DNA of 64,000 nt, taken from Macrostomum lignano. Its lineage: Eukaryota. The stretch's first letter is position 1. The number at the start of each line of letters is the position of its first letter. The stretch is taken from positions 219,322-283,321 of the forward strand of contig NIVC01002059.1 of NCBI GenBank assembly GCA_002269645.1, written 5' to 3'. The notes below the pieces were generated by a model, which did no database searches, was not told the origin of the DNA, and saw nothing but the letters and a program-made list of their open reading frames with translations. The translations under genes and the position numbers were made by a program. Positions 5,193 through 62,669 of the stretch are shown in pieces.

Positions 5193-5715
5193 ATTTTTTA
5201 AAAGAAAATATTGCATATAAGCCACACAAAATATGTTAACAATTTAGAAACCAGGCAATACATACAAACTGTAATTTATGAGTAAGGGATTCAGTAGCAT
5301 TTTAAACTTGAAATTAAAATTGATGTTTTAAATTAGATATTAGATCTCAATGACTGAAAGAATATGAATCAAGTGGCTTTATTTGTAGAAATTGGTCCAT
5401 CAAAAAAAGTTTTGGCCATTTGGAAAATTTTACTTTGAAATGTACAGTTTCTTGCAAAAAATCCTGAATTTTGTGTCCCAATAAGCAAGTAGCTATTGGC
5501 ATTATTTAAATGAAAGATACAGTTTAGACTCTATGCAGATTTAGCACAAAATAGACTGCAAAATTTGGATATCATTTTTGAAGCTTTTCCACTAGGTCCT
5601 ACTGGCAGTTGAGGCATCTAATAGTGACATTGCTGGGTTTGTTGCCCCTAGTAACATCTAAGTGATTCCCAATCACATGATTGTCCAAATTACACTGCAG
5701 CTGTAATTGCTTGAA

Positions 5716-10587: not shown

Positions 10588-13500
10588 ATGGCAGAGCACA
10601 TGCAATACAAGGGCCAGCTCATTGGTCACAATGGCTGGGTAACCCAGATCGCTACTAATCCACAATTTCCAAATATGATTCTTTCTGCCAGTCGGGGTAA
10701 GGATTTTTTCTTTTTGTATAAGTGGATTCTTAGTCAATGGTTTGACTTTAAGATTAACTTTTAATCAGTGATCTTGCCTATATTATTACCTGTCAAATTA
10801 CTAGTATAAAGACATGTTTACCTTTTGACTAATTTATAGAACTTTTTATCAAAAGAACAAAAGTTTAGGATCCAGGACAATTTGTTTGCTGGACTATTTA
10901 AATGACTAGGCTTAGTGGCAGTGGAATATTTATCTGCTGGTGCTAAATAATGAATAATAATTTATAAATAAAAAATGTCATTGTAATGATTAAGTCTTAA
11001 GTCTTAATTATTAGGGATTGACCAACTGTGATTTTTGTATGCATGATTGGAACTAGACCATAGTGTTGAACACTGTTAATGAAAATATTAACTTCCATTA
11101 ATGGCAAAAGTGTTGGCATTAAAACAAAAAATCTTAATTTAGTAACTCTTAATTTTGTTAAGTTAAATAAAGGTTAACTAATAATTGGTTAATAAGCATT
11201 AATCTATTAAAGACTTTAAAGTTAACTTGATTTAAAGATCTAAAGAATCTAAAGATTTCTTGCACTTTTTTTCAAAACAGACTTTCTAATGCACTGTCTG
11301 CTTTTCCACCTTTTTAGTGAAACACTGAGGTCATCTAAAAGATTTATAAGCTAAAAAAGGTGTCCTAATAAATAATAATTTTAAAAACTTTATGTATAAA
11401 TACTTTTATAAAAAATATATAATTTATTAATTTAAGTAAGTAAATGGTAAAAGAAGTAACTCTTATTTAATTCTTATTAAGTAACTTTATAGTAATGATA
11501 CGAAATGTGACTTGTGGATAGATAAACAGGTGTATTTTGTGTATGAATCACCTTGTCTTGTGTGTCTGTGGTCAGCAAAAGTTGGGACTTTGCAACCCAA
11601 ATGTGGCGCCAAAAAATGCATCAAGCATGCTCTAGTCTAGGGGGGGCATTAGCTACATAGAATATATGTGGCTCATTGATGTGCCGCTATAGAAATGAAA
11701 ACTTCTCCCACAAAAAATCTGCATAGAGAAATTTGAAATACAGTTACATGTATACTACAGGAGCAATTTGATTGGCCAAATATTTTTATTAAAAATGACA
11801 TTACTTAGCATTGGGTGTTGACAAAATGCAATGCAGGCAAATCTGTTGCAACTCACAAGGCTACATGTACGAGTAAATGCAGCACTAAAGGAAAAAGCAT
11901 TGCAGAAATCTCCACGGGCAAATTGCACTGCGGGAAAATCTCGGCAGGAAAAGCTCAGCGGGCAAATCTGCGCAGGCAAATCTGTGGGCAAATCTCGGTG
12001 GGCAATTTGTCTGCGGGCATTTCTCATGGACCCAGCTCGGCACCCTGTGTTGCTCTATGTACTCTGGCTATTGGGAGTTAGAAGAAATTTTATTGGCATT
12101 TTCAAAAGTTTAGTAGTATTGTACTATTGGGAATATTAAAAAATAATGAAATATGCCTAGACCAAATACCAACCTACCTTTCCAAGTTTATGGAAATCAT
12201 GCCCCTATCAACCTATGCTCCATTAACTCAATTCTCAATGCTCCACTTCTCTCAAAGCCTCAAATCTAAGCAAAATGTGTTTGCAACTTCTTAAGCACCC
12301 TTAAAATATGCTATATGTCCTTTATTTAATTCGTTTCATTCCTTTTTGAGTCAAGCCCATAACCCCTAATATTCTTAACTTTTCAAACTCAAACTTCTCA
12401 TTCCTCCATTCCTTTTAAAGCCTTTTCATAACTTAAGAGCATAATTATCCTTAATTCCTTCTTTCATTTATTTGCCATACTGCTTATACCAAAACCCAAC
12501 TCTTGACTTAGTGATTGGCATATGTATGCTTGAATTTTCAAGCATAAAGGCCACATGCTAGACAATGGAAGTAAATACCCTAGAAATTTTTTGTCTATAT
12601 ATATTGTATATTGCAACTATCTATTTGGTCAACAGTCTATTTTGGTAAAAAAATTGTTAGTCATTATAGCAACCACAACCAACCATTATAGCAACCAAAA
12701 CTGACATGAAGTTCCATTTTTAAAATGTTAATTTCTTTGTATATTTTGTTGACAAGTAAAAAAAATAATAGGAAAATTTCTAATGTCTAAGCAATGACAT
12801 TGGCAAGAAGTTCCTTTTCAAATTAATTACATTGATCTTTCTCTGTGTATTGTTGAAAGTATAGTCCCTGATTACATAATAGAATATTTTTTATTCAATT
12901 TCTCCATTTTATTTTTTCTATAGTAAAATGGTTCTATCTAACAATTTGTTACTATGGCAGTACATGGTACGCGCCTTAACTTTGTATGCAGCATGCTATT
13001 TGCATACACGTGCAGTCTCTTAAATTACATCAAAATAAGAGCAAAGTAAGAAATCTTATTGGGGATTCTAATTAACCATGCGATCTGGTTGACAATTTTA
13101 GACAAAAGTCTCATCATGTGGGAGCTGAACCGCGGCGAGAACTACGGCGTGCCTAAGCGCGCTTTACGCGGCCACAATCACTTCGTGTCGGATGTCGTGA
13201 TGTCATCTGATGGCCAGTTTGCCCTGTCCGGCTCCTGGGACAGCACCCTGCGTCTGTGGGATCTCACAACCGGCCTCACAACTCGTCGATTCACTGGCCA
13301 CACTAAGGACGTCCTGTCCGTGGCGTTTAGCGCCGATAATCGCCAGATCGTGTCCGGCTCGCGCGATCGCACTATCAAACTGTGGAATACGCTGGGAGTG
13401 TGCAAGTACACCATCACCGAGGACAATCACTCTGACTGGGTTAGCTGTGTGAGGTTCTCGCCGAACACGGCCAATCCAATTATTGTCAGCGCCGGTGTTG

Positions 13501-13955
13501 ACCGTCTAGTTAAGGTGTGGAACCTGACCAACTGCAAGTTGCGCACCAATCACATTGGGCACAGCGGCTACCTCAACACTGTTGCTGTCAGCCCCGACGG
13601 CAGCCTGTGCGCCTCCGGTGGCAAGGACGGCAAAGCCATGCTATGGGACCTGAACGAGGGCAAGCATCTGTACACCCTGGACGGTGGCGAGAGCATCAAC
13701 ACGCTGACCTTCTCGCCTAATCGCTACTGGTTGTGCGCGGCTACCGGTCCTCTAATTAAGATCTGGGATCTGGAGAACAAAGTGGTTGTTGACGATCTGC
13801 GCACCGAGGTTGTGGCCACTAGCACTAATCTGAAGCGCAAACCAGCTAGTCCAGAGTGCCTGTCGCTTGCCTGGAGTGCCGACGGTCAGACCCTTTTCGC
13901 TGGCTACTCGGACAATGTAATCCGCGTCTACGGTGTCACCGTGTCTGCCCAGTAG
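10588..13955 (+). CDS. RACK1: Receptor for activated C kinase 1 (WD40, 40S ribosomal protein), 320 aa
   Basis: Exon 1 10588-10696 ([23 protein letters not shown]...SASR G|gtaag) and exon 2 13102-13955 (ag|AC KSLIMW...). Typical RACK1 WD40 repeats ([35 protein letters not shown]). The phase-1 intron joins the exons in frame. Confidence 0.98.
12150..12560 (+). mobile_element. Highly decayed dispersed repeat, possibly a LINE remnant, in RACK1 intron 1
   Basis: ATGCCTAGACCAAATACCAACCTACCTTTCCAAGTTTATGGAAAT is similar to the reverse complement of ~42050-42100. The LINE identity is only weakly suggested. Confidence 0.4.
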
Positions 13956-14412: not shown

Positions 14413-16300
14413 GGATCCAGCCTCCCAGACTCAACAGATCCAGCCTCTCTGACTCAACAGATCCAGCCTCCCAGACTCAACAGATCCAGCCTCCCAGAAT
14501 CAACAGATCCAGCCTCTCTGACTCAACAGATCCAGCCTCCCAGACTCAACAGATCCAGCCTCCCAGAATCAACAGATCCAGCCTCTCAGAATCAACAGAT
14601 CCAGCCTCCCAGACTCAACAGATCCAGCCTCCCAGACTCAACAGATTCAGCCTCCCAGACTCAACAGATCCAGCCTCCCAGAATCAACAGATCCAGCCTC
14701 CCAGACTCAACAGATCCAGCCTCCCAGAATCAACAGATTCAGCCTCCCAGACTCAACAGATCCAGCCTCTCTGACTCAACAGATCCAGCCTCCCAGACTC
14801 AACAGATCCAGCCTCCCAGACTCAACAGATCCAGCCTCTCAGACTCAACAGATCCAGCCTCCCAGACTCAACAGATCCAGCCTCCCAGAATCAACAGATC
14901 CAGCCTCTCAGAATCAACAGATCCAGCCTCTCAGAATCAACAGATCCAGCCTCCCAGACTCAACAGATCCAGCCTCCCAGAATCAACAGATTCAGCCTCC
15001 CAGACTCAACAGATCCAGCCTCTCTGACTCAACAGATCCAGCCTCCCAGAATCAACAGATCCAGCCTCTCAGACTCAACAGATCCAGCCTCCCAGAATCA
15101 ACAGATCCAGCCTCCCAGACTCAACAGATCCAGCCTCCCAGACTCAACAGATCCAGCCTCCCAGACTCAACAGATCCAGCCTCTCTGACTCAACAGATCC
15201 AGCCTCCCAGACTCAACAGATCCAGCCTCTCTGACTCAACAGATCCAGCCTCCCAGACTCAACAGATCCAGCCTCCCAGACTCAACAGATCCAGCCTCCC
15301 AGACTCAACAGATCCAGCCTCCCAGACTCAACAGATCCAGCCTCCCAGAATCAACAGATCCAGCCTCTCTGACTCAACAGATCCAGCCTCTCAGAATCAA
15401 CAGATCCAGCCTCCCAGACTCAACAGATCCAGCCTCCCAGAATCAACAGATTCAGCCTCCCAGACTCAACAGATCCAGCCTCTCTGACTCAACAGATCCA
15501 GCCTCCCAGAATCAACAGATCCAGCCTCTCAGACTCAACAGATCCAGCCTCCCAGACTCAACAGATCCAGCCTCCCAGACTCAACAGATCCAGCCTCTCA
15601 GACTCAACAGATCCAGCCTCCCAGACTCAACAGATCCAGCCTCCCAGACTCAACAGATCCAGCCTCTCAGAATCAACAGATCCAGCCTCTCAGAATCAAC
15701 AGATCCAGCCTCCCAGACTCAACAGATCCAGCCTCCCAGAATCAACAGATTCAGCCTCCCAGACTCAACAGATCCAGCCTCTCTGACTCAACAGATCCAG
15801 CCTCCCAGAATCAACAGATCCAGCCTCTCAGACTCAACAGATCCAGCCTCCCAGACTCAACAGATCCAGCCTCCCAGACTCAACAGATCCAGCCTCCCAG
15901 ACTCAACAGATCCAGCCTCCCAGACTCAACAGATCCAGCCTCCCAGAATCAACAGATCCAGCCTCTCTGACTCAACAGATCCAGCCTCCCAGACTCAACA
16001 GATCCAGCCTCCCAGACTCAACAGATCCAGCCTCCCAGAATCAACAGATCCAGCCTCTCTGACTCAACAGATCCAGCCTCCCAGACTCAACAGATCCAGC
16101 CTCTCTGACTCAACAGATCCAGCCTCCCAGACTCAACAGATCCAGCCTCCCAGACTCAACAGATCCAGCCTCCCAGACTCAACAGATCCAGCCTCCCAGA
16201 CTCAACAGATCCAGCATCTCAGACTCAACAGATCCAGCCTCCCAGACTCAACAGATCCAGCATCTCAGACTCAACAGATCCAGCCTCACAGACTCAACAG
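14413..16300. repeat. 23-bp minisatellite (~82 copies) between convergent genes
   Basis: Unit CAGATCCAGCCTCCCAGACTCAA with variants (CTCTCTGA, AGAATCAA). Confidence 0.97.
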
Positions 16301-16542
16301 GTGGTCGGCCCATCATTTTCCTCAGCTAAACGAAGTTATCAATTTTTTTCAAAAGAGAATTTCAGCTATTTCATACACGAAACGAATTAATTACGTAGTA
16401 AGCATAGGGTCTCTAGTTTTTTTTTATAGTTGCTATTATTTAGAGTAAGTTTTCAGTAACTTTGAAAAATCGGAAGAGGAACAGTTAGAAATTCAATGAA
16501 ATAACGATTTTGCGTTCAACAAGTCCAATAATCAATCAGGAT

Positions 16543-19500
16543 TCAGATTGTGGTTCTTAGTTTCGGGAATTTGTCGTAGCGCACAGTGTCGCAATAGGCC
16601 AACATGTCGTCCGGTGGGGTGGACCAAATCTGTCCATTTGCGTCTGCTAGCACTGTGTAGTCGTCTTCAACCGTGCTCCAACTTGACGGCGGTATACCGC
16701 TGCTGGCAAAAGTACTTAATGCACTTTGCATATGCTGCATCAGAGCCTGATCGCGCCGGTCCCAGCTATCAGCTGCGCGCGGCGCCGTGCCCAGCATGAG
16801 GAGCAGGTCGAGGCCGTAGAATGCTCCCGTGTGCTTGCTGGCGCCGCCGATGGCTAGAAATTTCGACGGGTATTTCAGACTGTAGCGCTGCACAAAGTGA
16901 TAGATTGGCGAGCTGCGTTTGGCCTGCTTAACTAGGGATTTTGCCAGGTAGCGATAGGGGCAGATGAAGCGCAATAGGGTGGCCGCTCTGGCTGCGGTTA
17001 GCAGGCCCTGCGGGAGATTGCACAGATATTGAGACTTTCAACGCCCGTTGAAAGCGTTACTTTGGCAAGAATCGCGGGGTCGTTTCACAAACCTAAAATT
17101 TACAATGCCGAAAACTCAGAATGCCGCTATTCTTTACAATGCTGAAATTTCATGAACCCGAATTTTCACAATTCTTTTCAGTCAGTAAAATTTGTCATCA
17201 TGAAATTTTTTTCGACATTGTAAAATTTCGGTATTATGAAATGGGCTGCATAAATTTTCGACAACATGAAATTTCTGATTCTAATTCATAAAGTGACGCA
17301 GAACGCCTCAAATTAAACCATTAACGACTTTTTGCCTGGCGACTTGTACCGTGACATCTGGTCGTGTATAGATCGGTCCTATATTAATTTTACGTGTTAT
17401 CTGCAAGACTGCAACGACTCTGGGGACAACGCAAGTGGCTCTGTGACAATTCTTGGCCTAGATTCCGGTTTTATGAGGAAAGAAAAAATCCATTTTTCAC
17501 TGCTTGCTTTATATAGAACAGAAATAAATGAACACCTGACCGCTTCCGGTTGGCTAGGAGCACAGATACTATTGTAGAATACTATTTTAGTATGTGGCCA
17601 GTAGTAACGTGCAGTATCAGTTGTGTACTGTCAAGACAGTCACAACCACAGATACTAAAATAACTAGATGATCCACTCGGGCATATTTACTTAGAAAAAC
17701 AGCTTTCTACTTTCAGTTCAGTAGCAAAGAAGAATACATAAGCTATTTTATGAAAATAAAGCCAGCTCAAACGACTTTGATAAGTTTAGAAGCCCAAGCT
17801 TGCAGGCGTAAACAGCTTGCTAATTGGTTCAGCAATAATGTACATTAGCCAGTCCACTGAAATGTACATGGCAGCTTTAGGCTGGAATTCCGAGAAGGCA
17901 ATAAAAATTGGGGCGGGGCGGGGGTAGTGTGGAAAGGCACGGTTGGAGGTTTAAGCTAGGGGGGTAAGTGCCAAAAAGAGCCTTGGCTTTAAAAGTACAT
18001 TAAATGCTTCAGTTTAACTTGCTACTGAACTGAAAGTAGCTTGCACGCAAATGTGCTGAATGGCCCATCTGGTTATTCTCGTATCTGTGGTCACAACTCG
18101 TATTTCTCTCACGTTGGCGGGGTCACCATTTTGCCAGGTGCGGTCCTGTCCTATCGCAGCTATAGGATGAACTGGAGCTCACAATGGTAGATTGCGTAGT
18201 AGGTAAGGGACTGAAGTAATGGCGCACTCGTGTTTGGCCATTATTTCAGTACCTTACCTACTACGCAACGTCATTGTCTATAAGACACATAGAGGCCATT
18301 ATTTCAGCATAGCGTAGTCTGGTGGCCATTATTTCAGCGTGCCGGAAGTGGTCATTATTTCACACTTTTTATCATGCTTTAATTGGCTGTTTTGAGAGTT
18401 ATTTTACCCATAGATGACTGAGATGTGTGTCATAGTTTTACCATAGACAACACGTGATGAGTGCTGATTTCGTTTACGTCTTGCAAGAAATCAGGAAAGC
18501 GGGTATTACAAGTGAAAGCTATTTGTCTTGCCAAACAACTATGGCTGGTGCATCTCGTCAAACAGCCCCGCTTATTAATTGGAAAAATTTTCTTGTCGAC
18601 GACTGAACGAACCGTGCGACCCATGCTTCAGTGGAGATGACACAGGAGATGCGGGTGAAGCATGGTAAGCATAATGTGTCAACATTGTAAGTAAATTAGT
18701 GGCTATACTATATGAAACTGAATTTTTTACAATGTCCATTAATCTGCAGGTCAGATGGATTCGGAACGCGCAGTTCGCTTCTTCGAGAACTGCCACTTCA
18801 AGGATTAATGAAGGTTTCAGTTTTAATGAGCAACTTCTGTTGAACAGTCTATGACTACTGTGTTGTTTTTTGTGTTTAATGTGTGCGTTTTCCATTGTTT
18901 GTTAGCTAAAATGTCTTGACTATCCTTTTTTCACTGTATTCCAGAATGCCATGTAGACTGCGATCATTCCATTATGTCAGTTAATAAATGCATAGTTAAC
19001 TAATCGTCTATGGTTCAAGCGCCTGCTAAAGCTGAAATAATTTAGATCGAAATTTCACATTATTTCACAGCTTTTGAAACGCAACCCCGTCAGCAGCAGC
19101 AGCCCATGCATCGGCTGCGTGCAGTACGACTCAGCGCGGATGATGTCGCCTGCCAGAGCTTAGACGGAGCAGGCGGACGCGGCGATAGAAGTGCGACAGC
19201 ATGCATTCAAAGGTACTCATCAATATTAGCAAACCTGCGAGTCCGAGCGCGACATATCGGGCCGTTTTAGACGAGCAATCAGCCGATCAGGACTGCCGGC
19301 TAGTTCCAGATCCTTGACCGTTTTAAGAACTTTCTGCCAGACTTTATGCCACTTGTCCGAGGCCCGGAAGCCGGGAAAACCTTCGTAGTGATCGGCTACG
19401 TTGCCAAATACTATGGGAATGTCGTCCCACGAGCCCAAGCCCAAAGGACCTGCCTCAGTGGGCGAAGAGATCAGAGTGACACTGTCCGGTGCCAGCCATT

Positions 19501-22500
19501 CTAGCGGGGCCGGCGAAGCTTTGGTGTTGCCGGACACGGACAGGCTGCCCTGTTTGGTCAGTCCGGCCAGGCTTGGCCACCAGTCCTCCAGGTAGCCGGT
19601 GCGAGTCCACGCCTTGAATACGTCTTCGTTCGATGTCAGGTAGACGAGCAGGCGGCCCTTTGATGATAACAGTCGGGCTTCAGTTAGCGTGCATTCATAC
19701 TAGTAAAAACCACCAGCGCCATCCCCAATGCTCCCTATACGGTAAATGCAAGCAGGCGCGTCCCCACGGGGGGGGGGGACATGCCCCCCCCCCCAGTAAA
19801 AGCTCTGGGGGACATGCCAATGCTTTGTTTCCCCCCCCCCACCCCACCTTGTGAGTCGTTGTGGTAATCAATAACTTTTCTTCAGGGCGCCAATAGCGCC
19901 ATAAGTGCCTGCGGCGCTAAAATGAGTGCCTGTGGCGCTAAAATGAGTGCCTGTGGCGCTAAAATGAGTGCCTGTGGCGCTAAAATGAGTGCCTGTGGCG
20001 CTAAAATGAGTGCCTGTGGCGCTAAAATGAGTGCCTGCGGCGCTAAAATGAGTGCCTGTGGCGCTAAAATGAGTGCCTGTGGCGCTAAAATGAGTGCCTG
20101 CGGCGCTAAAATGAGTGCCTGTGGCGCTAAAATGAGTGCCTGCGGCGCTAAAATGAGTGTCTGCGGCGCTAAAATGAGTGCCTGGAGCGCTAAAATGAGT
20201 GCCTGCAGCGCTAAAATGAGTGCCTACGGCGCTAAAATGAGTGCCTGCGGCGCTAAAATGAGTGCCTGTGGCGCTAAAATGAGTGCCTGTGGCTCTAAAA
20301 TGAGTGCCTGTAGCGCCAAAATGAGTGCCTGTGGCTCTAAAATGAGTGCCTGTAGCGCCAAAATGAGTGTCTACGGCGCAAAATAATCGAGTGCCAAAAT
20401 TTAGTCATTTACATGTACATGTTGAACTCTTGGCTTTGTCCCCCCACCGTAAAATCCATGGCGACGCCCCTGCATGCGTCGAGATACATACAGTTCCTAA
20501 ACTTCAGTCCGCCTTGAGTGAAATCGCCCCACAACCAGCTCTGAGGCAGTTCTGCCCATTCCGCTGACTCCTGAGTACATGCAAGCGCGCCAATACTGTA
20601 CGCAGGCACGCAACTCACACACGCGCTCACACAGGGTGCACAGCGGCCCTGACTGTCTAATCGTCAGACATGTACACTCTCTGTGCCTTGAGGTTGGCCC
20701 TCACGAGTGTGAATCTCGCACGACAACCCGCCGGCTAATTTTCGTGCTCAAGCACCAAACGAACGCGGGCCACGCACGGAATCGAACCAGGGGCCGTGGC
20801 GTGAGATTCAGACGCGTTTAACGCTGAGCTGGTCTGCCCCCCCTGCCTGCATTCCTCCACACTCTCGACTAAGATCTCACCTCGTCCATCGTCTCCAACT
20901 CGCGTCGGCACTCGGTGACATTGTCCACCTTACAGTTGAGCTGCGCCTCTGTAATGTTGGTCCACCTGTTGGCGTGGATCTTTTTCAATGCTTTCAACAT
21001 CTCGGGCGCCGAGTCCGGGATGCGGGACGGACCGCTGGACAGCCAGGCCCCGTGGACGAGTCGCCTGCCTGTCCGCTGCTGCAGTTGCAGCAGCGCCATT
21101 ACCATCGCCGCGCCGCTGCCGTGACCGAACACTGTGACTCTGGGGGGGGGAATTGACAACTACCTTTTTTCTTTTTTGTCTTTAATGGGTTTCTTTCTAC
21201 TATCGCCAATCCGTTTCTGCACCCCATCACCAATCCGTTTCTGCACCCCATCACCAATCCGTTTCTGCACCCCATCACCAATCCGTTTCTACACCCCATC
21301 ACCAATCCGTTTCTACACCCCATCACCAATCCGTTTCTGCACCCCATCACCAATCCGTTTCTACACCCCATCGCCAATCCGTTTCTACACCCCATCGCCA
21401 GTCCGTTTCTACACCCCATCGCCAATCCGTTTCTACACCCCATCGCCAGTCCGTTTCTACACCCCATCGCCAATCCGTTTCTACACCCCATCGCCAGTCC
21501 GTTTCTAAACACCATCGCCAGTCGGTTTCTACACCCTATCGCCAATCCGTTCCTACACCCCATCGCCAATCCGTTTCTACACCCCATCACCAATCCGTTT
21601 CTACACCCCATCGCCAATCCGTTCCTACACCCCATCGCCAATCCGTTCCTACACCCCATCGTTATGTCTGGAAAGTCTTACAAGATCGACAAAGTCGATA
21701 TCTCAGCAGCTCACTTGTTTTTATCCCCGCCGAAGTGCTCGACAGTCTTTCGCAGATGCTCGAGACCGCGAACCAGGTCCGACAGGCCGTAGTTGACCAC
21801 CCTGAAGCCGGTGGCGTCGCCAGGTGGCCGGAAGGTGCCATGGAAGGCCAGCCGGTAGCCGATACGGACAACAACGGCCTGAAGCTGGTCTGGCAAGCCG
21901 TCGTCCGAGTGCAGCAGCGAGTCCTGGCCGAGGCTGCGCGTAGTCTCGGACACGAAACCGGAGCCGGTGACGAACACAATCACCGGGTAGCCGCTGTTGT
22001 AGTCGCGCGGCCGGCCAATACTCAGAAACAGGCAGTCCTCGGACATGGCCGGCTCGCCAGGGACGCCGACTAGCGGGTCCGCTTCGGGCAGGCGGATCAT
22101 GGTGGTCATGTTCGGCTCTACGAGCGGCGGCTCCGGCGTGCGAACCTGGTGCAGCTGCCTGAGAGATGTTCCAAAAGCGATCGGTCAGTTTTCTAGATTG
22201 GTCAGTTTTCTAGATCGGTCAGTTTTCTAGATTGGTCAGTTTTCTAGATTGGTCAGTTTATTAGATTGGTCAGTTTTCTAGATCGGTCAGTTTTCTAGAT
22301 TAGTCAGTTTTCTAGATTGGTCAGTTTTCTAGATTGGTCAGTTTTCTAGATTGGTCAGTTTTCTAGATTGGTCAATTTATTAGATCGGTCAGTTTTCTAG
22401 ATTGGTCAGTTTTCTAGATTGGTCAGTTTATTAGATCGGTCAGTTTTCTAGATTGGTCAGTTTTCTAGATCGGTCAGTTTTCTAGATTGGTCAGTTTTCT

Positions 22501-25267
22501 AGATTGGTCAGTTTTCTAGATTGGTCAGTTTTCTAGATTGGTCAGTTTTCTAGATTGGTCAGTTTTCTAGATTGGTCAGTTTTCTAGATCGGTCAGTTTT
22601 CTAGATTGGTCAGTTTATTAGATTGGTCAGTTTTCTAGATTGGTCAGTTTTCTAGATTGGTCAGTTTTCTAGATTGGTCAGTTTTCTAGATCGGTCAGTT
22701 TTCTAGATTGGTCAGTTTATTAGATTGGTCAGTTTATTAGATTGGTCAGTTTTCTAGATTGGTCAATTTTCTAGATTGGTCAGTTTTCTAGATTGGTCAG
22801 TTTTTTAGATTGGTCAGTTTTCTAGATTGGTCAGTTTTCTAGATTGGTCAGTTTTCTAGATTGGTCAGTTTATTAGATTGGTCAGTTTATTAGATTGGTC
22901 AGTTTTCTAGATTGGTCAGTTTTCTAGATTGGTCAGTTTTCTAGATTGGTCAGTTTTCTAGATTGGTCAGCTTTCTAGATTGGTCAGCTTTCTAGATCGG
23001 TCAGTTTTCTAGATTGGTCAGTTTTCTAGATTGGTCAGTTTTCTAGATTGGTCAGTTTTCTAGATCGGTCAGTTTTCTAGATTGGTCAGTTTATTAGATT
23101 GGTCAGTTTTCTAGATTGGTCAGTTTTCTAGATTGGTCAGTTTTCTAGATTGGTCAGTTTTCTAGATTGGTCAGTTTTCTAGATCGGTCAGTTTTCTAGA
23201 TTGGTCAGTTTATTAGATTGGTCAGTTTTCTAGATTGGTCAGTTTTCTAGATTGGTCAGTTTTCTAGATTGGTCAGTTTTCTAGATCGGTCAGTTTTCTA
23301 GATTGGTCAGTTTATTAGATTGGTCAGTTTATTAGATTAGTCAGTTTTCTAGATTGGTCAGTTTTCTAGATTGGTCAGTTTTCTAGATTGGTCAGTTTTC
23401 TAGATCGGTCAGTTTTCTAGATTGGTCAGTTTTCTAGATTGGTCAGTTTTCTATATCGGTCAGTTTTCTAGATTGGTCAGTTTTCTAGATTGGTCAGTTT
23501 TTTAGATTGGTCAGTTTTCTAGATTGGTCAGTTTTTTAGATTGGTCAGTTTTCTAGATTGGTCAGTTTTTTAGATTGGTCAGTTTTCTAGATTGGTCAGT
23601 TTTCTAGATTGGTCAGTTTTCTAAATCAAGAGGCTAAAGTTACCTATGCCGGACCAGGTGATAATGAGAGCAGAACCGCGGACTGGAGTGCACATTGCAC
23701 TTGTGCACGCCGTCTATGAATCGGCAGTCGCTGGTCCGGTGCCCCAGGATGCACAATTCCAGACCGTGGATTTTCTCTGGCATGCGCCAACGGCCTGAAG
23801 AGATGTAAAACGGTAATTCAAATATTTAGGCTAGATTATCTGATCGGCCTTCCCGTTTTAATGAGGTTGCTCTACCAGCTCTGTTGAGATTGTCCTACCA
23901 GCTCTGTTGAGATTGTCCTACCAGCTCTGTTGAGATTGTCCTACCAAGTCTGTTGAGGTTGTCCTACCAGCTCTGTTGAGATTGTCCTACCAGCTCTGTT
24001 GAGATTGTCCTACCAAGTCTGTTGAGGTTGTCCTACCAGCTCTGTTGAGATTGTCCTACCAGCTCTGTTGAGATTGTCCTACCAGCTCTGTTGAGATTGT
24101 CCTACCAGCTCTGTTGAGATTGTCCTACCAGCTCTGTTGAGATTGTCCTACCAGCTCTGTTGAGATTGCCTAAGTTGAACTACCGTGATCAAATGGCATC
24201 CAAACGTGCATCCAAATAAAAACGATCCATCAGATGACAAGCGAGACTCTACCCAGCAGTTTGTCTGCGAGCTCCTTCAGCGGGCCGACCTCCTCTTGCG
24301 GCTTCAACGGGCACGGCTGCAGAGCGAATGGCACGGCTCGATAATTAGCTGAGCTGATGTTGCTGCCAAGGTACCAGGCGCATTCCAACTGGTTGACAAC
24401 GGCCAGGTACTGCGGAGGCGGTCGAATCAGCACCAACACTAGGTGCACAGCCAGGGACAGCAGACAGACGACTAGCAAGGTGCAGAAGGCGCTGTTGGAT
24501 ATGAGGTAGCTGGCGGCGCCCGTAATCGAGTCGAGTTTACTGCCGGTGCCCAGGTAGATCAGAGCTGATTTCGTTATCAGGTCCGCGTTCGGCACCTGAC
24601 TGTTGGGAAAGAAGTCGTGAACGTTGCGCTTGCGCCGCCATTGAAGAGTTGTGATTTTTATCTTCTGACTGCGCGTCAGCACCGACGGAGAAGGTGCCGG
24701 CGAGGACGGTTGATCCGCGGCTGATGATGGAGACGTGGGTGTCTCAGCCGGAGGCGGAGGCGGTGGTGTCGAAGATGTCGGAGGTGCCGTGGGAGGTGAA
24801 GGCGGTGGTGTCGAAGATGTCGGAGGTGCCGTGGGAGGTGAAGGCGGTGGTGTCGAAGATGTCGGAGGTGCCGTGGGAGGTGAAGGCGGTGGTGTCGAAG
24901 ATGTCGGAGGTGCCGCGGGAGGCAGAGGCGGTGGTGTCGAAGATGTCGGAGGTGCCGCGGGAGGCAGAGGCGGTGGTGTCGAAGGCCTCGGTGGAGCTGG
25001 ATTTAATGGAGGTGTCGAAGAAGGCCGAAGCGGAAGATCATTAGGAAGAGGAGTCGGGGTTGTCAAAGGCTCAGGTGGAGGTTTCGTAGGTGTCTTGGGA
25101 GGCGGAGGTTGGGGTGTCTTTTGGGGTGGAGACGGTGTCTTCGAGCGCGGAGCTGGCGGTGTCTTCGAGCGCGGAGCTGGCGGCGTCTTCGAGCCGGGAG
25201 GTGACTGTGTCTTAGCACGTCGAGGCTTTTTACGCGACTTGGACTTCTTTGCCGATGTATTCTCCAT
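16543..25267 (-). CDS. Type II membrane cholinesterase-like protein without catalytic Ser/His (neurotactin-like), ~932 aa, 6 exons
   Basis: Exons 25267-24253, 23794-23644, 22158-21715, 21139-20881, 19699-19235 (acceptor less certain) and 17007-16543, all with GT-AG and consistent phases. Type-B carboxylesterase motifs: YRAVPFA..GRWRMP, SEDCLFLSI, GYRLAFHGTF, NYGLSDLVRGL, FGGDKNKVTVFGHGSGAA, RFICP. Pro-rich N-terminus, then a hydrophobic helix (AFCTLLVVCLLSLAVHLVLVLI). Confidence 0.88.
17710..18036. mobile_element. MITE, Tc1/mariner-like (TA TSD)
   Basis: 18-bp TIR CTTTCAGTTCAGTAGCAA / TTGCTACTGAACTGAAAG, with TA on both sides. Confidence 0.7.
18181..18277. repeat. Long hairpin (32-bp stem, 13-nt loop) in the last intron of the esterase-like gene
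   Basis: 18192-18223 pairs with 18237-18268 (one mismatch, one G-T). Three GGCCATTATTTCA-like direct repeats follow. Confidence 0.85.
19753..20472. mobile_element. Non-autonomous TIR element (hAT-like CAGG termini) carrying a 21-bp tandem array
   Basis: Termini CAGGCGCGTCCCCACGG / CCATGGCGACGCCCCTG match at 14 of 17 positions. Internal array AAAATGAGTGCCTGTGGCGCT (~23 copies, 19901-20385). A second partial copy lies at 48625-48910. No clear TSD. Confidence 0.65.
20570..20840 (-). mobile_element. tRNA-derived SINE copy 1
   Basis: Minus strand GGGGCAGACCAGCTCAGCGTT (A box) ... GGTTCGATTCC (B box, 20778-20788). The body GAGGGCCAACC..AAGGCACAG..GTGTACATG..GGGCCGCTG is shared with 31770-32010, 47661-47785 and 62251-62330. 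Confidence 0.75.
21204..21661. repeat. 24-bp intronic minisatellite (~19 copies)
   Basis: Unit CCAATCCGTTTCTACACCCCATCG/A. Confidence 0.95.
22179..23623. repeat. 17-bp intronic minisatellite (~85 copies)
   Basis: Unit GATTGGTCAGTTTTCTA. It fills almost all of intron 2 (22159-23643). Confidence 0.97.
23863..24170. repeat. 23-bp intronic minisatellite (~13 copies)
   Basis: Unit CTACCAGCTCTGTTGAGATTGTC. Confidence 0.95.
24760..24985 (-). repeat. 36-bp coding tandem repeat (12-aa PP(S/L)PP(T/A)APPTSST unit)
   Basis: About 6 in-frame copies in exon 1 of the esterase-like gene. Confidence 0.9.
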
Positions 25268-26439: not shown

Positions 26440-26445
26440 TTTATT
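26440..26445 (-). terminator. ELP4 poly(A) signal
   Basis: AATAAA 83 nt after the stop codon, followed by TTTGGTTGGTG. Confidence 0.7.
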
Positions 26446-26527
26446 TAGCCAAAATAAAATGCCAGTAGAATTTGCATCAAATACCAGAACCACAGTTTGA
26501 TTAGTACGACAGATACGGTAAGAGTAA

Positions 26528-26700
26528 TCAAAAGTCCAATGGAGTACCCTGCGCAGAGGTGCCGCAGGTTGGCTGCGGCACTGATTTGCTCACTCGACTG
26601 GCCGTCTCCGAGATGTCGGGTGGCAGGTGCAGCCGCTGTAATTGGTTGTAGGAGAGCGGAAATACAGCTGTCTGTCTGTCTGTCTGTCCGTCTGTCTGTC

Positions 26701-26737
<37 letters not shown>

Positions 26738-26844
26738 GTGTGTTTGTCTGTCTGTCCGTCTGTCTCTGTGTGTTTGTCTGTCTGTCTGTCCGTCTGTCTG
26801 TCTGTCTGTCTGTCCGTCTGTCTGTCCGTCTGTCTGTCTCTGTG

Positions 26845-26883
<39 letters not shown>

Positions 26884-26941
26884 CTGTCTCTGTGTGTCTG
26901 TCTCTCTGTCCGTCTGTCTCTCTGTCCGTCTGTCTGTCTCC

Positions 26942-27019
<78 letters not shown>

Positions 27020-27024
27020 GTGCC

Positions 27025-27079
<55 letters not shown>

Positions 27080-27190
27080 GTGTGTTTGTCTGTCTGTCCG
27101 TCTGTCTGTCTGTCTGTCTGTCTCTGTGTGTTTGTCTGTCTGTCCGTCTGTCTATCTGTCTGTCTGTCCGTCTGTCTGTCTCTGTGTGTT

Positions 27191-27221
<31 letters not shown>

Positions 27222-29797
27222 CTGTCTCTGTGTGTCTGTCTCTCTGTCCGTCTGTCTGTCTCTGTCTGTCTGTCTGTCTGTCCGTCTGTCTGTCTCCGTC
27301 TGTCTGTCTGTCTGTGTGCCTGCCTGTCTGTCTGTCTGTCTGTCTGAGCCCAACTACCTGCACCTAAGCCTACAGGGCACATATAGCGGCCATCAGTCAC
27401 CACAAAACGCAAAACACGCCAACCTGAATAAGGAAATTCTTCCGGCGCACTCTGAAGCCAAACTCGAGCGTGTCCGGCCGGGCCACCGGGGCCGCGGAGC
27501 CGGGCAGGCAGGGCAGCTTGGCCAGGCTCAGCAGGCCGTGCAGGTCGCGGTACAAAGGATTGGCGGCACGGCGTCGACCGCCGGCCACCTGCAGAGAGTC
27601 CAGCCGCAGACAGTAGTCGACCAGGTGCCGCATTCGATCGGACAGGATCGGCCGCTGAAAATCGTTGGCAATTGTTCCAAGTCCACCACCACAGATACTA
27701 CTATAAGTAGATAGGCCACTCATTGGCTCGCTTAAACAGTTCTCTACTTGCAGTTCAGTAGTACGAATGCGTAAGCGCAGGGCCTATCCACCAGTTCTCA
27801 CTTCTCAGCCAATTCCACATGAACTCACCTGCAGTCGCAGACAGTCAGGCACGGTGAGCCAGACGGTGCACAGGTGCTTGGCGCAGAGATCCCGCAGGCT
27901 GTACAAACAGCGCAGGGCGTCGCTCTCGTTGTCTAAGCGGCCCCAGAGTGGGGATGCGAAACCTGGGATAACTGCAGGCGAGGCGGGGAGCGAAGAGGTT
28001 TTTATAGTTACAGGAAATCTAACCCAGTAGATTAGATAGACCGGAAATCTCACCCAGTAGATCAGATAGACTGGAAATCTCACCCAGTAGATCAGATAGA
28101 CTGGAAATCTCACCCAGTAGATCAGATAGACCAGAAATCTCACCCAGTAGATCAGATAGACTGGAAATCTCACCCAGTAGATCAGATAGACCAGAAATCT
28201 CACCCAGTAGATCAGATAGACGGGAAATCTCACCCAGTAGATCAGATGGACCGGAAATCTCACCCATTAGAGCAGATAAACCGGAAATCTCACCCAGTAG
28301 ATCAGATAGACCAGAAATCTCACCCAGTAGATCAGATAGACGGGAAATCTCACCCAGTAGATCAGATGGACCGGAAATCTCACCCATTAGATCAGATAGA
28401 CGGGAAATCTCACCCAGTAGATCAGATGGACCGGAAATCTCACCCATTAGAGCAGATAAACCGGAAATCTCACCCAGTAGATCAGATAGACTGGAAATCT
28501 CATCCATCGCACCCAGTAGAGCAGATAAACCGGAAATCTCACTCATCTCACCCAGTAGAGCAGATAAACCGGAAATCTCACTCATCTCACCCAGTAGAGC
28601 AGATAAACCGGAAATCTCACTCATCTCACCCAGTAGAGCAGATAAACCGGAAATCTCACTCATCTCACCCAGTAGAGCAGATAAACCGGAAATCTCACTC
28701 ATCTCACCCAGTAGAGCAGATAAACCGGAAATCTCACTCATCTCACCCAGTAGAGCAGGATTCGAAATCTCGGTCCATGGCAAGTGTCAAAAAAAGAAGT
28801 CAGTACCAAGAAAAAGATAACAAATATGAAGGAATTAAACTAGCCAGCAAGTCTTACCAACTTTGAGCAGACTCTGCGTATCCTCAGTGGGCCGGTCGGG
28901 ATACCGGAATTCCGGCCCGCCATCGACAAGGCGCTGCCGAATTTGATCCAAAGCCAGGCTGGCATTGGCAGGGAATGAGCTGCGGGTTGGAGCATCAGTA
29001 TAGAAGTATTATCTCGGTGTGTATGACCAGAAATTCAAGGCCAAGAGTAAGATTACCTACCCACCTACCTACCTACCTAACTACCTACTTATCTATCTAT
29101 CTATCTATCTATCTAATTTCAGTTTAAACTCATTATACTACTTACGATGCTCTTATCATTAAGCGGTATGGAACGGGTATTTTTGAATTGCGTGATACTG
29201 CTGCGAAAGGCCATATTGGGTAATCGCGGATCCAGGGACTCACTACATCACTCACTAAGGGCTAGGCAATTTCCTACAGAAAAACCTATTTAGTTTAGCA
29301 TTTTTCAACGAACGCCAGGATCTGTCAATTGGAACGCACCCGAATTCGTCAAGATGAAGAACGTTCAATCGAAGCGAGCCAGCCTCTTCGAGCTTTGTCA
29401 AGTCTAACTTCTTTGACAGATCGAAACTTTTAGCTCCGGTTGTGGATTTGTCAAGGCTGTGCCGCTCCTATAATGGAGAGGGGTGAGTCAGTTTGTTCGC
29501 AAAAAGCAGCAGACATGCCCGTTGCACTGAGTCAATTTACTACGAGAAAATCATTGAGGCGAAAATGATACGATTAATCAGTATAAAGTAGTAAAAAATA
29601 TTATTATTTATAGTCACTCGCCTCGAACTGCGGCGCGTTCATGTAACGCCAGGCGATGGCCAGGCCGTCGTCGTTGCCAGCGCCGCTGTCTCCAATGCCA
29701 CCTGCTGGTTGCTGTTGCTGTTGTTGTTGTGATTTTGTACCCTCCTCAAGATCTGGCAGATTCTGGAATTAAGTGCGTTGTTTAGTAGAGGTAGTAA

Positions 29798-29883
<86 letters not shown>

Positions 29884-29893
29884 ATAGTAGTAG

Positions 29894-29979
<86 letters not shown>

Positions 29980-30542
29980 CGGTAGTAGTAGTAGTCGTCG
30001 TAGTAGTAGTATCAAAGAGAACCCCGCAATTACTCCCATAGGACATCTCACACCCCGCCACCCACCGCTAGCAGGTACTCCGAGTGCGCTTGGTTGGCGG
30101 CCACTAGCATCACGTGATGCCCATCCAGCAGGCTCTGGGCCAGGAAATAGCGAGTCAACACGCCTGCATAGGCGCCTGTTGCGTCTTCGTCTGTTGTTGG
30201 GTTTTTTATGGGTGTCGTAGAAACAATTGGCATATGATATTATCAGAGTGATGTTACAATAGGGATTTCATAGTCGCTGCCAGCTAATTAAAAAGGGATG
30301 CCAGTGTTTCCATCCTCACCGACAACGCACAACCCGCCGACAGCCAGCCCGCCGCCAATCAATACGTCGAGAGCGGCCACTCCGCAGCTGGTGACCGTCG
30401 CCTGCTGATTCTGCGCCACCAACTGCTGTTGCTTCTGCTGCTGTTGCTGCTGTCCACAGACGGGCCGGCCGCCGGGCACGCGAGGCCGAGGCCGCGAGAT
30501 GCCGACGCCGGGGCCGCCTGGAGCAACGCGACGAAAGCCAGA
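26528..30542 (-). CDS. ELP4: Elongator complex protein 4, 8 exons, 406 codons, no in-frame ATG
   Basis: Exons 30542-30320, 30190-30066, 29762-29622, 29467-29340, 28979-28858, 27971-27829, 27654-27424 and 26635-26528, all in frame. ELP4 motifs: TSCGVAALDVLIGGGLAVGGLCVVDED, LAIAWRY, SFDLSKK, GFASPLWG, NPLYRDLHGLL..KLP, RLHLPPD...LDF*. Confidence 0.93.
26668..27345. repeat. (TCTG)n-derived microsatellite in the last ELP4 intron
   Basis: Imperfect TCTG/TCCG/TGTG runs. Source of the spurious TDRQ/VCLS ORFs. Confidence 0.98.
28014..28770. repeat. 30-bp minisatellite changing to a 39-bp unit
   Basis: Unit AAATCTCACCCAGTAGATCAGATAGACCGG. From ~28500 the units carry 9 extra nt (CTCATCTCA). Confidence 0.95.
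29786..30011. repeat. (TAG)n microsatellite in ELP4 intron 2
   Basis: About 70 TAG triplets. Confidence 0.98.
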
Positions 30543-32685: not shown

Positions 32686-33713
32686 TCAAATGTCCCGACC
32701 ATTATTAGCATGGGTAAAGCCGTTAGCCAGCTGCTGATGCTGATGGCCTTGGCGAGTTTCGAATCCGTCAACTGACTCGCCGTCGCCCTCGTCGTCCGTG
32801 GTAACGTAGCCGTTGGTGACGATCTCCGGATAGGCCGGGGCCAGCATCTGCCTCATCTCCGGGTCTTCACCGGCCAGGTCCAGTGGCGTCTCGCCGCGCT
32901 GACAGAAAGGGGAAGAGGATTGTCAGTTAGACAAAATAAACAGGAAATTACTTGTTTAACAAAATAAATCTCTTGGGGTAAACTTTGCAAATCACCCCAA
33001 TTAAAGGCATAACCCCATAATTACAAGCAAAACACCCCCATTAAGAGCAGAACACCTTAGGTAACAGCAGAACACCTCAAGTAAAAGCAGAACACATCAG
33101 GTAAAAGCAGAACAGACAGACAACAATACACCTCAGGTAAAAGCAGAAAATTCCTATGAAAAGCAGAATACCTCAGTTAAATCAGAACATCCCAATTAAA
33201 AAAGAGCATCCATAATATAAAATCACAAAACTCCAATACTCCAATCAGAAGCCGAACATCTCAAATGGAAAGCACGTTACAAAGATTGGGACCAGAAAAA
33301 CGAATAGAAGCGGAATATTGCAGCTAAAAGCAGATTCTCACGCACCATGGACTTCCTCTCCGGATTGGCCCCGTAGCTAATCAGCAGTTCCACAGCCGCC
33401 TTCGCTTCCCGATTCACGGCCCAGTGAAGCGCCGTCCAGCCCGACATGTCAGCGGCGCCAACATCGGCTCCGTGGTCCAGCAGGCACTTGGCTAGCGGCA
33501 GGTGGCCGTGGTAGATGGCGAACATCAGCGGAGTGAAGTCGGCCTCGCCGCGAGCGCCCGATCTCGGCGGCTGGGATCGATCATCGACGCTTAGGCCGGG
33601 ACAGCGGCTGAGCAGGCACTCGGCTATGTCCACTAGGGTGCGATCGAAGCGTGACCTGGCGGGGAGGTGGCGGTGCCGTTAGCTGGCCGACTGGGACTGG
33701 CAGACAGACACTC

Positions 33714-33767
<54 letters not shown>

Positions 33768-34652
33768 CAAGACAGGCGGACAGACAGACAGACACTAAGA
33801 CAGACAGACAGACAGACAGACAGATGAAGACAACAAGACAGACAGCTAGAGTAGTTAAACACTCAACCCCTCTCCAATTTACCTGTCCAACGGCAGGGCC
33901 GCCGGTCCATTAGAAGTCGGCGGCGCGATCGGTGCCGAAGAAACACTTCGGGTGGCAGTGTCGCCCTCTGCGTCAACAGCAGATTGCTGCTGCTGGTTGC
34001 GCGCGGCGGCGGCGGCAGCGGCAGCAGCGACGGCGGCCAACGCGTCCTCGCCGTGGCCATTGCCGGCGGAATCGCCGTTACCAGAGGCGGCGGCGGCAGC
34101 CTGCAGCTCGGCCATGACAGCGGCGTACACAGGCGAGTTGGCCTGGTCCAGACAGGCCGTGCTAACCCGCTTGCCGTTCTGACAGATTTGACTCTTTGGC
34201 GCCGCCCGGCACAGCTCGTGCAGGCAGTTGCGGCCGTCGTTATTCCGGTGCAGGAAGTCGCACCTGGCGTCCAGCAGGCAGCGCACAACGGCCGGCTGGC
34301 AGAAATAGCAGGCCATGATGAGGGCCGACCAGCCTCTCTCGTCTACAGCGCTGGGATCGGCGCCGGCTTTCAATAGCATTTGAACAATTTCATCTTGGCC
34401 AGTCATAGCGGAATGGTGCAGCGCAGTGTGCTGCTTGCTGTCGCGAGCGTCGACCTGGCAGCCGGCTGACAGCAGCAGGCGGACAATCTCTGGCTTGCCC
34501 TGGCTGGCCACGTGGATGGGGCAGGACTGGTGCACGTGGCTCACCCAGTTGACATCGATGCCGCCAGATTCTAATAATTGGCGAACTTTCCATTCGCGAC
34601 CGTAGCTGCAGCACTCCCAGAATGCCTCCTGTTTGGTGGCAGCCTGGCCCAT
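32686..34652 (-). CDS. Ankyrin-repeat protein, ~430 aa, 3 coding exons, putative N-myristoylation
   Basis: Exons 34652-33883, 33655-33346 and 32898-32686 are in frame. Ankyrin repeats: CPIHVASQG, TALHHSAMTG, SALIMACY, TPLMFAIYHG, TALHWAV, TPLDLA. N-terminus MGQAATK. Confidence 0.92.
33700..33845. repeat. (ACAG)n microsatellite in the ankyrin gene intron
   Basis: Direct observation. It reads (TCTG)n on the transcribed strand, just upstream of the acceptor. Confidence 0.95.
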
Positions 34653-61100: not shown

Positions 61101-62636
61101 ATTAAATGTGCCCACTAAAAGCCCAAAATCATTTTTTACACCAACATGCACATAAATGTGCGACCTCCAAAATTTGGTTGGCTGTGCAACTTAGTTTTAA
61201 CAAAAATGCAATGTAGTTTTTGGCCAAAAATGTGACTTACATGTAAAAAATGCAATTAATGCAACATTGGGTGAATGGCAGGAGTAACTATGACTGTCTT
61301 ATAAACCCAAAATGCCTTGTCAGCTATTTAGTACTACTACTTGGTGTTTTTTGGGTGGGCATTTTTGCAACTTCTATGGTTGGCTGCCAAATTGGTTGGC
61401 CGACTTGGTCAACTGTTGCACATGTATGAACATGCATACTAGATTTCTTGAGTATACCCTAGAAATTTTCAGCATATATGCCTTCTTCTAGACTATGACA
61501 GTGGTTCTCAACCTTTTTTTCAGGCAACCCTAATTTATTCACTTGCATTATATTTAATGTTTGCAACCCCTTTTATAATCAAAATAAGACATCATTAAGT
61601 ATTATGTACTTACATTTCTTAGTGCTACAAGCCCCAGAAAATGGTTACGCAATCCCACTGTGGGTTGTAACCTGCAGGTTGAGAACCACTAGACTATGGC
61701 ATATGTTGGTATACAAAAAGTGATTTTGGGCTTTTGGTGTATACATTTTGTGTGTGACATGCACTGAAAATTAAAAAACTATGTTATCAATAATAGTCAC
61801 AATAGTTTTCCATCATTCCATAATCATAAAATTTGAAAATTTAATGCAAAACTGATTTCTATGTTTTTTGCAAGATAACGATTTGATGTTTTTTTATTCT
61901 TTATATATGAAACATAATATGAATGTAATTATTATTTTTGTTATAATTCTATTTCTAGATATCTATTCAGAGGTTTTGAACTATAAGAGAAGAAGTAGAG
62001 AAATATTGTCAGAAATTTATGTACACTTGCAATAAAATTAGAGTAAGTGATATATATTAACAGTAATAATTAATTATAATTAAATAATATTTAAATAAGT
62101 AATAATATATATACATATATATAAATGACTATATGACTGTAGAGGCATACTCTAGGGTCTAGTACGGCACTCTTGTGCCAGTAGTCCAGCCTTGATTCAA
62201 TTGCAGTCACATTAGTTTGGGATAAATTGGAATCTTAGCTTAGGTTAGGCTTGTGCAATTAACACCCTTGAGGGCCAGCCCCCTCAAGGGCCAGCAAACT
62301 TGATAAATCAAGTTTGGGCCGCTGTATGTGGACCGGCTCCACTGAAAATATTTAAAGATTGTCTAAAGTCCTCTAACAAGTTTATATCGCTTGATTACCA
62401 CTGATCAGGTTCCAAGACAATGGCCGCAAAAAGTATCACGAGGCTGCCAAGCGGCTACTTGAACCGGAGAAGAACACCCTGTCTGTGCACTTTGCCGATG
62501 TCGACCGGTACAGCAGCTCGCTGGCTGGCGTTGTTCTCAACCAGTATTACCGAGTTTACCCGGCTCTGTGCACAGCGCTAACCCTGTTTGTCTCCGAGCT
62601 GGCCGCCGCAGAGTCTTCCCAACAGGCCCAGCAGTC

Positions 62637-62669
<33 letters not shown>

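Follow-up and report, generated by a model that had tools for sequence, protein, structure and literature searches.

Does the flatworm Macrostomum lignano encode a counterpart of neurotactin, a cell adhesion molecule of insects? The question is raised by a gene on the minus strand of contig NIVC01002059.1 (assembly GCA_002269645.1), within a stretch of 64,000 nucleotides (contig positions 219,322 to 283,321, the final 64 kb of the contig) that is referred to here as the window and provides the coordinates used below. In the developing nervous tissue of Drosophila, neurotactin (Nrt) is expressed where cells touch, and it mediates heterophilic adhesion through Amalgam, a secreted ligand with immunoglobulin (Ig) domains. 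Type I topology is found in neuroligin and gliotactin, which have a signal peptide and, toward the C-terminus, a transmembrane helix followed by a tail with a PDZ-binding end; glutactin is secreted. Neurotactin is described as a non-catalytic insect adhesion molecule in which the cholinesterase-like ectodomain is tethered to the transmembrane helix at its N-terminal face (PMC5943944). We propose, with a probability of roughly 60%, that the M. lignano locus is a real coding gene for a type II pseudo-esterase with all residues of the catalytic triad replaced, that the protein belongs to the branch of neurotactins and para-nitrobenzyl (pNB) esterase-like proteins, and that its esterase domain acts as a binding surface.

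The gene occupies positions 25267-16543, and its six exons join in phase into a coding sequence of 2649 nt with 882 codons and a stop codon (Table 1). All introns are of the GT-AG type, and the splice phases of neighbouring exons are compatible. The 882 codons include no in-frame stop; the other two frames have 19 and 37, and the introns 5.7-8 per 100 codons. The GC content of the coding sequence is 60%, and 66% at third codon positions, whereas that of the introns is 35-55%. The open frame, the composition, and the Pfam match described below are far beyond chance. Exon 1 contains the sole in-frame ATG, encodes the proline-rich basic tail and the transmembrane helix, continues into the opening strands of the esterase domain (LECAWYLG...AVPFALQP), and ends at 24253 with the phase-1 donor CTGG/GTAGAG, where the slash marks the splice site. 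Exon 2 sits in a 250-bp island of unique sequence flanked by two minisatellites. Its acceptor ttttacatctcttcag/GC and donor AG/GTAACT are compatible with the donor of exon 1 at 24253 (phase 1) and the acceptor of exon 3 at 22158 (phase 2). The 151-nt exon was added to the model because it fits these phases and supplies a cysteine-rich segment, the Cys pattern of which agrees in the alignment with those of two relatives, P0019 and P0020. A five-exon model, in which exon 1 is joined to an exon at 22154 through the weak donor GTCGGC, was rejected; compared with the relatives, it is missing the cysteine-rich segment between FALQP and SEDC. The open reading frame (ORF) of exon 1 has no record as a called gene, and there is no single-exon annotated gene within 10 kb of the esterase gene. 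The introns and the 3' flank (16000-24172) consist mostly of minisatellites, each of which yields long spurious ORFs on both strands.

The protein has a predicted type II topology, with a cytoplasmic tail, a signal-anchor helix, and no C-terminal anchor. The tail starts with the basic stretch KKSKSRKKPRRAK and contains 33 PxxP and 2 PPLP motifs; no Pfam domain was found in residues 1-259. A 42-bp minisatellite within the tail reads in frame as the 14-residue repeat PPTSSTPPP(L/S)PP(A/T)A. Residues 1-25 are strongly hydrophilic, with a mean Kyte-Doolittle value of -2.07, and residues 260-281 are the sole strongly hydrophobic stretch of the protein. Hydropathy indicates neither an N-terminal signal peptide nor a hydrophobic segment C-terminal to the esterase domain. 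The residues LECAWYLG...AVPFALQP follow shortly after the helix and align to the start of the domain in the relatives (xCGxVxG...GIPYAxPP). The C-terminal end ...DKFPKLRTTI lies 15 residues past the last conserved cysteine, as it does in every relative. The hydropathy profile and the C-terminal end differ from those expected for the type I orientation of neuroligin and gliotactin. All four NxS/T sites after the helix are located within the esterase domain. The predicted type II arrangement is independent of splicing, because the ATG, tail, helix, and domain start are all in exon 1.

Residues 422-842 match the Pfam family COesterase (PF00135) with E = 3.7e-39 and 135.5 bits (cut-off 27). The AlphaFold2 model of the ectodomain has a predicted template modelling score (pTM) of 0.80 and a mean predicted local distance difference test score (pLDDT) of 66. 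Its top Foldseek matches are mouse Ces2 and the acetylcholinesterases of Torpedo and human, with E ~1e-19 over the whole fold and a TM-score, normalised to the target, of ~0.69. The columns of the catalytic triad were read from an alignment of 169 sequences, 152 of which are outgroup sequences. The nucleophile elbow FGGDKNKVTVFGHGSGAAMV is encoded by exon 4, and HMMER pairs its GHGSG with GESAG of fumonisin esterase and Bacillus pNB esterase. The nucleophile column contains Gly544, where 140 of the 152 outgroup sequences have Ser; one transition suffices to turn a Ser codon (AGC) into this Gly codon (GGC). The position of the triad acid, which is Glu in 142/152, is occupied by His677. The histidine column contains Tyr792 (His in 140/152), and HMMER pairs AFYGLDL with AFHALEL of pNB esterase. 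The oxyanion-hole motif is VTGSGF in place of HGGGF. Because Ser, Glu, and His are all replaced, the aligned columns indicate that the domain cannot act as a serine esterase, and such chemistry would be excluded in practice.

An active, membrane-anchored hydrolase that uses another nucleophile, for example the Ser adjoining the canonical position in GHG-S-G, is highly improbable. Glu and His are replaced in addition to Ser, the adjoining Ser lacks flanks of the GxSxG type and is Gly in a spider relative, and the oxyanion-hole sequence has changed from HGGGF to TGSGF. These features outweigh the presence of Ser or Thr after the Gly in most relatives and the report, from zymogram band sizes, of a functional type II 'carboxylesterase B' in Fasciola hepatica (PMC8623527). 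From F. hepatica, the protein THD28606.1, labelled 'Neurotactin' in GenBank, and the 735-residue type II 'carboxylesterase B' (PMC8623527) were compared by description and label only. This Fasciola paper was the only one found in a literature search for neurotactin in spiralians.

Much of this architecture had been proposed in an earlier, sequence-only reading of the locus, made without knowledge of its origin. Its six exons, with the first ending at 24253, were reproduced from the sequence and the relatives. The GHGSG elbow in place of GxSxG was seen at the reported site and assigned to Gly544 by both HMMER and the 169-sequence alignment, and the His-to-Tyr change in GAFYGLDL lies in the expected column. 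The absent signal peptide, the basic, proline-rich N-terminus of about 250 residues, and the single transmembrane helix agree with the hydropathy profile, which together with the triad columns argues for a type II, catalytically dead, cholinesterase-like protein. The apparently non-arthropod source is the rhabditophoran flatworm M. lignano. The third triad replacement, Glu to His677, is an addition to that account.

Homologues of the protein are distant. Word-index searches with the protein and with an alignment gave generic esterases only. When 1.84 billion cluster representatives were scanned exhaustively with HMMER, the best match was an M. lignano UniRef protein and no identity exceeded 37%; no protein more than 50% identical was found among 15 billion public proteins. 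The gene is thus absent from the public protein sets of the searched collection, since the exhaustive scan gave nothing above 37%. One M. lignano UniRef entry, A0A1I8G704 (P0011), is a 3380-residue prediction with seven stretches of carboxylesterase domain, ~24-35% identical to the studied gene. It is probably a fusion of several tandem genes and suggests a large esterase family in M. lignano. Raw full-sequence phmmer rankings were inflated by fused two-domain gene predictions, and best-domain scores and clade profiles were used instead.

The nearest relatives are P0019 and P0164, which come from transcript-like contigs (runs DRR639838 and DRR639055), and P0020, which is present only in UniParc. 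They reached 132, 122, and 118 bits, respectively, in full-sequence phmmer comparisons with the M. lignano protein, whereas other single-domain esterases did not exceed 88 bits. This group of three is characterised by a short tail, a transmembrane helix with an LSxxxH motif, a four-Cys insertion, a G(Q/H)G(T/S)G elbow, and a G(F/Y)PG motif. LSxxxH, the insertion, and G(F/Y)PG(F/E) are common to the M. lignano protein, P0019, and P0020, and these are the only proteins found to have the four-Cys insertion in the region of the omega loop. The His-to-Tyr replacement recurs in P0020. The gene call of P0164 (locus L004, 388-2460) begins at GTG and runs through a TGA; the true protein most likely starts with MIHIELRKLK and ends with ...KMAKRN.

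A search with P0020 matched cestode proteins of 620 residues with (S/A)YGSG elbows, from Echinococcus granulosus (P0190, named 'para-nitrobenzyl esterase'), Hymenolepis (P0192), and Anoplocephala (P0189). Next in rank came a protein annotated as neurotactin from a spider (AHGGG), and a type II protein from a mollusc (GHGSG) followed at a lower score. The cestode proteins and P0019, P0164, and P0020 resemble the M. lignano protein in the type II anchor, the Gly at the nucleophile position, and the same signature residues. However, they differ in their tails, which are 35-75 residues long and not proline-rich, and in the triad, where Glu is kept, as is His in most of them; their identity to the M. 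lignano protein is 23-29%.

The missing annotation might be taken to mean that the locus is no longer expressed, or is decaying, as a leftover copy in a duplicated genome rich in repeats, and has lost its triad together with its function. This explanation is improbable. Absence from every public protein set speaks for it, as do the change of three triad residues where most relatives retain Glu and His, the introns filled with minisatellites, and the recent expansion of the 42-bp repeat in the tail. Nevertheless, the six exons, whose splice sites are canonical and compatible in phase, give an uninterrupted frame of 2649 nt, which is preserved through the 42-bp repeat. Family-specific non-catalytic motifs are retained, including the Cys pattern of exon 2, and the loss of Ser is a conserved, family-wide state.

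The M. lignano protein was compared with the arthropod neurotactins of the wasp Ceratosolen (P0002) and the spider Parasteatoda (P0193). In common with them, it has type II topology, a long N-terminal tail, and a transmembrane helix directly before a cholinesterase-like ectodomain without a catalytic Ser. It also shares an additional N-terminal cysteine (xCGxVxG), the partner of which precedes the omega loop, and a second disulfide loop that is short. Further shared features are the Trp of AW(L/I)S, the (I/V)RxxCP motif, and an end ~15 residues past the last cysteine. The identity is only 21-22%. The elbow is GHGSG in M. lignano, GHRAG in the insect protein, and AHGGG in that of the spider, which, unlike the M. 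lignano protein, retains both Glu and His. In contrast to the acidic tail of neurotactin, that of M. lignano is basic and rich in proline.

The same arrangement of long tail, transmembrane helix, and esterase domain with the same signature residues is present in proteins of the mollusc Plakobranchus ocellatus (P0210) and the nemertean Tubulanus polymorphus (P0156/P0318), both without the four-Cys insertion. The mollusc protein, ~21% identical to that of M. lignano, has the same GHGSG elbow, and Asp and Ile occupy its Glu and His positions, respectively; the nemertean protein has a GLGSG elbow and retains both Glu and His. Secreted pNB-esterase-like enzymes of Mercenaria (P0067) and Glandiceps (P0092) also have the N-terminal Cys pair, the Trp, the short disulfide loop, and the C-terminal end. 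They differ in that they carry a signal peptide, lack an anchor, and retain all of the Ser/Glu/His triad (GQSSGG). The non-arthropod relatives appear in databases as 'para-nitrobenzyl esterase-like', 'carboxylic ester hydrolase', or 'hypothetical protein'.

Membership of the M. lignano protein in this neurotactin/pNB-like clade is well supported by rare sequence characters and by profile scores. The additional N-terminal cysteine is present in 15 of 16 clade members and 3 of 152 other sequences. The Trp of AW(L/I)S is present in 15 of 17 members and in a single one of the 152 others, which also has the cysteine. Twelve of the 13 type II members have a Gly elbow, the insect protein having Arg. 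Further characters in common are the Arg in (I/V)RxxCP, the short second disulfide loop, and the early C-terminus. In the best-domain scores of the cestode protein P0190, nine neurotactin/pNB-like proteins reached 142-165 bits and everything else at most 122. A profile built from nine non-flatworm clade members was tested against nine control clade profiles, one of which (G6) includes neuroligin and cholinesterase-like sequences. The M. lignano protein scored 158.7 bits with the clade profile and 115.2 with the best control. The corresponding values are 184 and 108 bits for P0019, 180 and 108 for P0020, and 290-307 and 167-184 for the cestode proteins. Profile G6 was not among the five best for the M. 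lignano protein and hence scored below 96.4 bits, and the signature residues of the clade are absent from the neuroligin examined. By these sequence measures, the protein sits apart from neuroligins and cholinesterases. The likeness to neuroligin, gliotactin, and glutactin consists in a dead cholinesterase-like domain that, as far as is known, is used for binding and not for catalysis.

The earlier proposal of a neurotactin orthologue is therefore retained in part. The rare characters and the profile test favour grouping with neurotactins rather than with neuroligins and cholinesterases; the narrower claim, that the protein and Drosophila neurotactin are one-to-one orthologues, is plausible but was not borne out by neighbour-joining (NJ) trees. 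In NJ bootstraps, the M. lignano protein groups with P0019, P0164, and P0020 in 98%, and this group widened by the cestodes appears in 66-68%. The flatworm, type II, and secreted pNB-like proteins together are monophyletic in 30%. The sequences that intrude among the flatworm proteins and neurotactins are the nemertean type II protein and the secreted enzymes with an intact triad from a bivalve and from a hemichordate. At times, four fungal or unnamed sequences intrude too, as expected with very long branches.

Several observations weigh against the proposed reading. A strict clade of flatworm proteins plus neurotactins appears in 2% of NJ bootstraps, and a strict type II clade in 0%. A type II-only profile leads a secreted-enzyme profile by only 8.6 bits for the M. 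lignano protein, and the order is reversed once P0115, a GC-rich, bacterial-looking sequence, joins the secreted set. The protein is strongly divergent, with 21-29% identity to its nearest relatives, and 149 residues of the AlphaFold2 model, mostly in loops, have pLDDT <50. Hydropathy is the sole basis of the predicted topology. The gene is absent from public annotations and from the assembled reads of the searched collection. A Fasciola type II membrane esterase is credited with carboxylesterase activity, and anchored flatworm members need not all be inactive (PMC8623527).

The tree and the small profile margin are what would be expected if the M. lignano protein had arisen by convergence from a secreted pNB-esterase-like enzyme, with the signal peptide turned into an anchor and the triad lost separately; it would then be a relative of neurotactin rather than an orthologue, and its role might differ. 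The type II proteins of spider, mollusc, and nemertean score 259-320 bits against the secreted active enzymes and 186-225 against one another, and a single transition from Ser to Gly could recur. Faster evolution of dead proteins would, however, by itself explain the higher scores to slowly evolving enzymes. The Gly nucleophile and type II topology occur together in four phyla, no type II member retains Ser, and the type II-only profile is favoured by 25-50 bits in all but one of the eight proteins of the flatworm type. Separate origins are therefore unlikely, though they deserve to be taken seriously, and these comparisons make it likely that the type II dead state arose only once.

If the gene encodes a neurotactin-like pseudo-esterase as proposed, the 259-residue proline-rich, basic tail would point toward the cytoplasm and helix 260-281 would serve as the signal anchor. 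The full-length cholinesterase-like alpha/beta-hydrolase domain would face outward, presumably at the cell surface. A non-catalytic role of the domain is suggested because the fold, disulfide pattern, and family motifs have been kept over large distances. By analogy with neurotactin, the dead domain probably binds an extracellular protein partner, and a role in adhesion may follow from the same analogy. The tail, which is rich in PxxP motifs and presumably disordered, may dock cytoplasmic partners of the SH3 or WW type.

The gene is best described as an unannotated and unusually divergent member of an already known type of pseudo-enzyme surface protein, and the prevailing view of how the family works is unchanged by it. 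A broader history, for and against which the evidence is evenly balanced, is that neurotactin is not an arthropod invention. The type II esterase with the Ser-to-Gly replacement would predate the split of Ecdysozoa and Spiralia and would persist in arthropods, molluscs, nemerteans, and flatworms. Its source would be an ancient lineage of secreted 'pNB-esterase-like' enzymes, which is still found in molluscs and hemichordates. The lineage leading to Macrostomum would later have lost Glu and His and built its proline-rich tail by in-frame expansion of a minisatellite. The findings suggest that membrane-anchored dead esterases of the neurotactin type are widespread in protostomes, and provide a short list of residue characters that separates the neurotactin/pNB-like clade from other esterases. 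They also add a gene model for M. lignano, a species used to study regeneration in which transgenesis and RNA interference are established and which would therefore be a tractable non-arthropod system for asking what such proteins bind.

Table 1. Positions in the window of the pseudo-esterase gene, its parts and motifs, the surrounding minisatellites, and other coding features.
Feature	Position	Strand	Remarks
Exon 1	25267-24253	-	1015 nt; continuous ORF from 25267
Exon 2	23794-23644	-	151 nt; Cys-rich loop segment RWRMPEKIHGLELCILGHRTSDCRFIDGVHKCNVHSSPRFCSHYHLVRH
Exon 3	22158-21715	-	444 nt; SEDCLFLSI, oxyanion-hole region VTGSGF, YRLAFHGTF, FGGDKN
Exon 4	21139-20881	-	259 nt; elbow, AWLSS motif, short disulfide loop NCKVDNVTEC
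Exon 5	19549-19235	-	315 nt; IPIVFGNVADHYEGFPGF with His677 at the triad Glu position
Exon 6	17007-16543	-	465 nt including stop; LLRFICP, GAFYGLDL, last conserved Cys (AYCDTV)
Start codon	25267-25265	-	ATG
Stop codon	16545-16543	-	TGA
Predicted cytoplasmic tail	25267-24491	-	Residues 1-259; 32% Pro, net charge +20
Coding minisatellite in tail	24984-24750	-	42-bp unit x 5.6, 96% matches (Tandem Repeats Finder)
Single transmembrane helix	24490-24425	-	AFCTLLVVCLLSLAVHLVLVLI, residues 260-281; hydropathy maximum 2.9 (mean of 19-residue window)
Elbow GHGSG	21126-21112	-
Gly544 codon	21120-21118	-	GGC
His677 codon	19390-19388	-	CAC
GAFYGLDL	16827-16804	-
Tyr792 codon	16818-16816	-	TAC
Minisatellite	16000-16300		23-bp unit x13
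Minisatellite	19904-20384		21-bp unit x23
Minisatellite	21202-21661		24-bp unit x19
Minisatellite	22179-23623		17-bp unit x85
Minisatellite	23872-24172		23-bp unit x13
720-residue ORF	5707-7869	+	No Pfam match
RACK1-like WD40 gene	13059-13955	+	Pfam WD40, E = 4e-51; one long exon
Repeat arrays	26445-28866, 29639-30061		Artefactual ORFs
Ankyrin-repeat gene	33277-34652	-	At least 2 exons (Pfam)
C2H2 zinc-finger ORF	47888-48379	+	Pfam
RGS7-like ORF	54268-56100	+	Single exon, 610 residues; DEP, RGS_DHEX, and RGS domains
MCM helicase gene	62485-63015	+	N-terminal/OB part, near the window end (Pfam)

The window as a whole is characterised by long exons, GT-AG introns, and many minisatellites. The RACK1-like gene is convergent with the esterase gene, and its first exon was not found in 11000-13059. 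The 720-residue ORF, which has a Gly/Arg-rich C-terminus and may encode a mobile-element protein, lies in an island of high GC content surrounded by AT-rich DNA. The repeat arrays at 26445-28866 and 29639-30061 give rise, for example, to TDRQ/SVCL repeats of 300-400 codons and to poly-Thr/poly-Leu frames, and show no sign of real genes. The RGS7-like ORF is identical letter for letter on four contigs of the assembly, including NIVC01002059.1, which fits a duplicated or polyploid genome.

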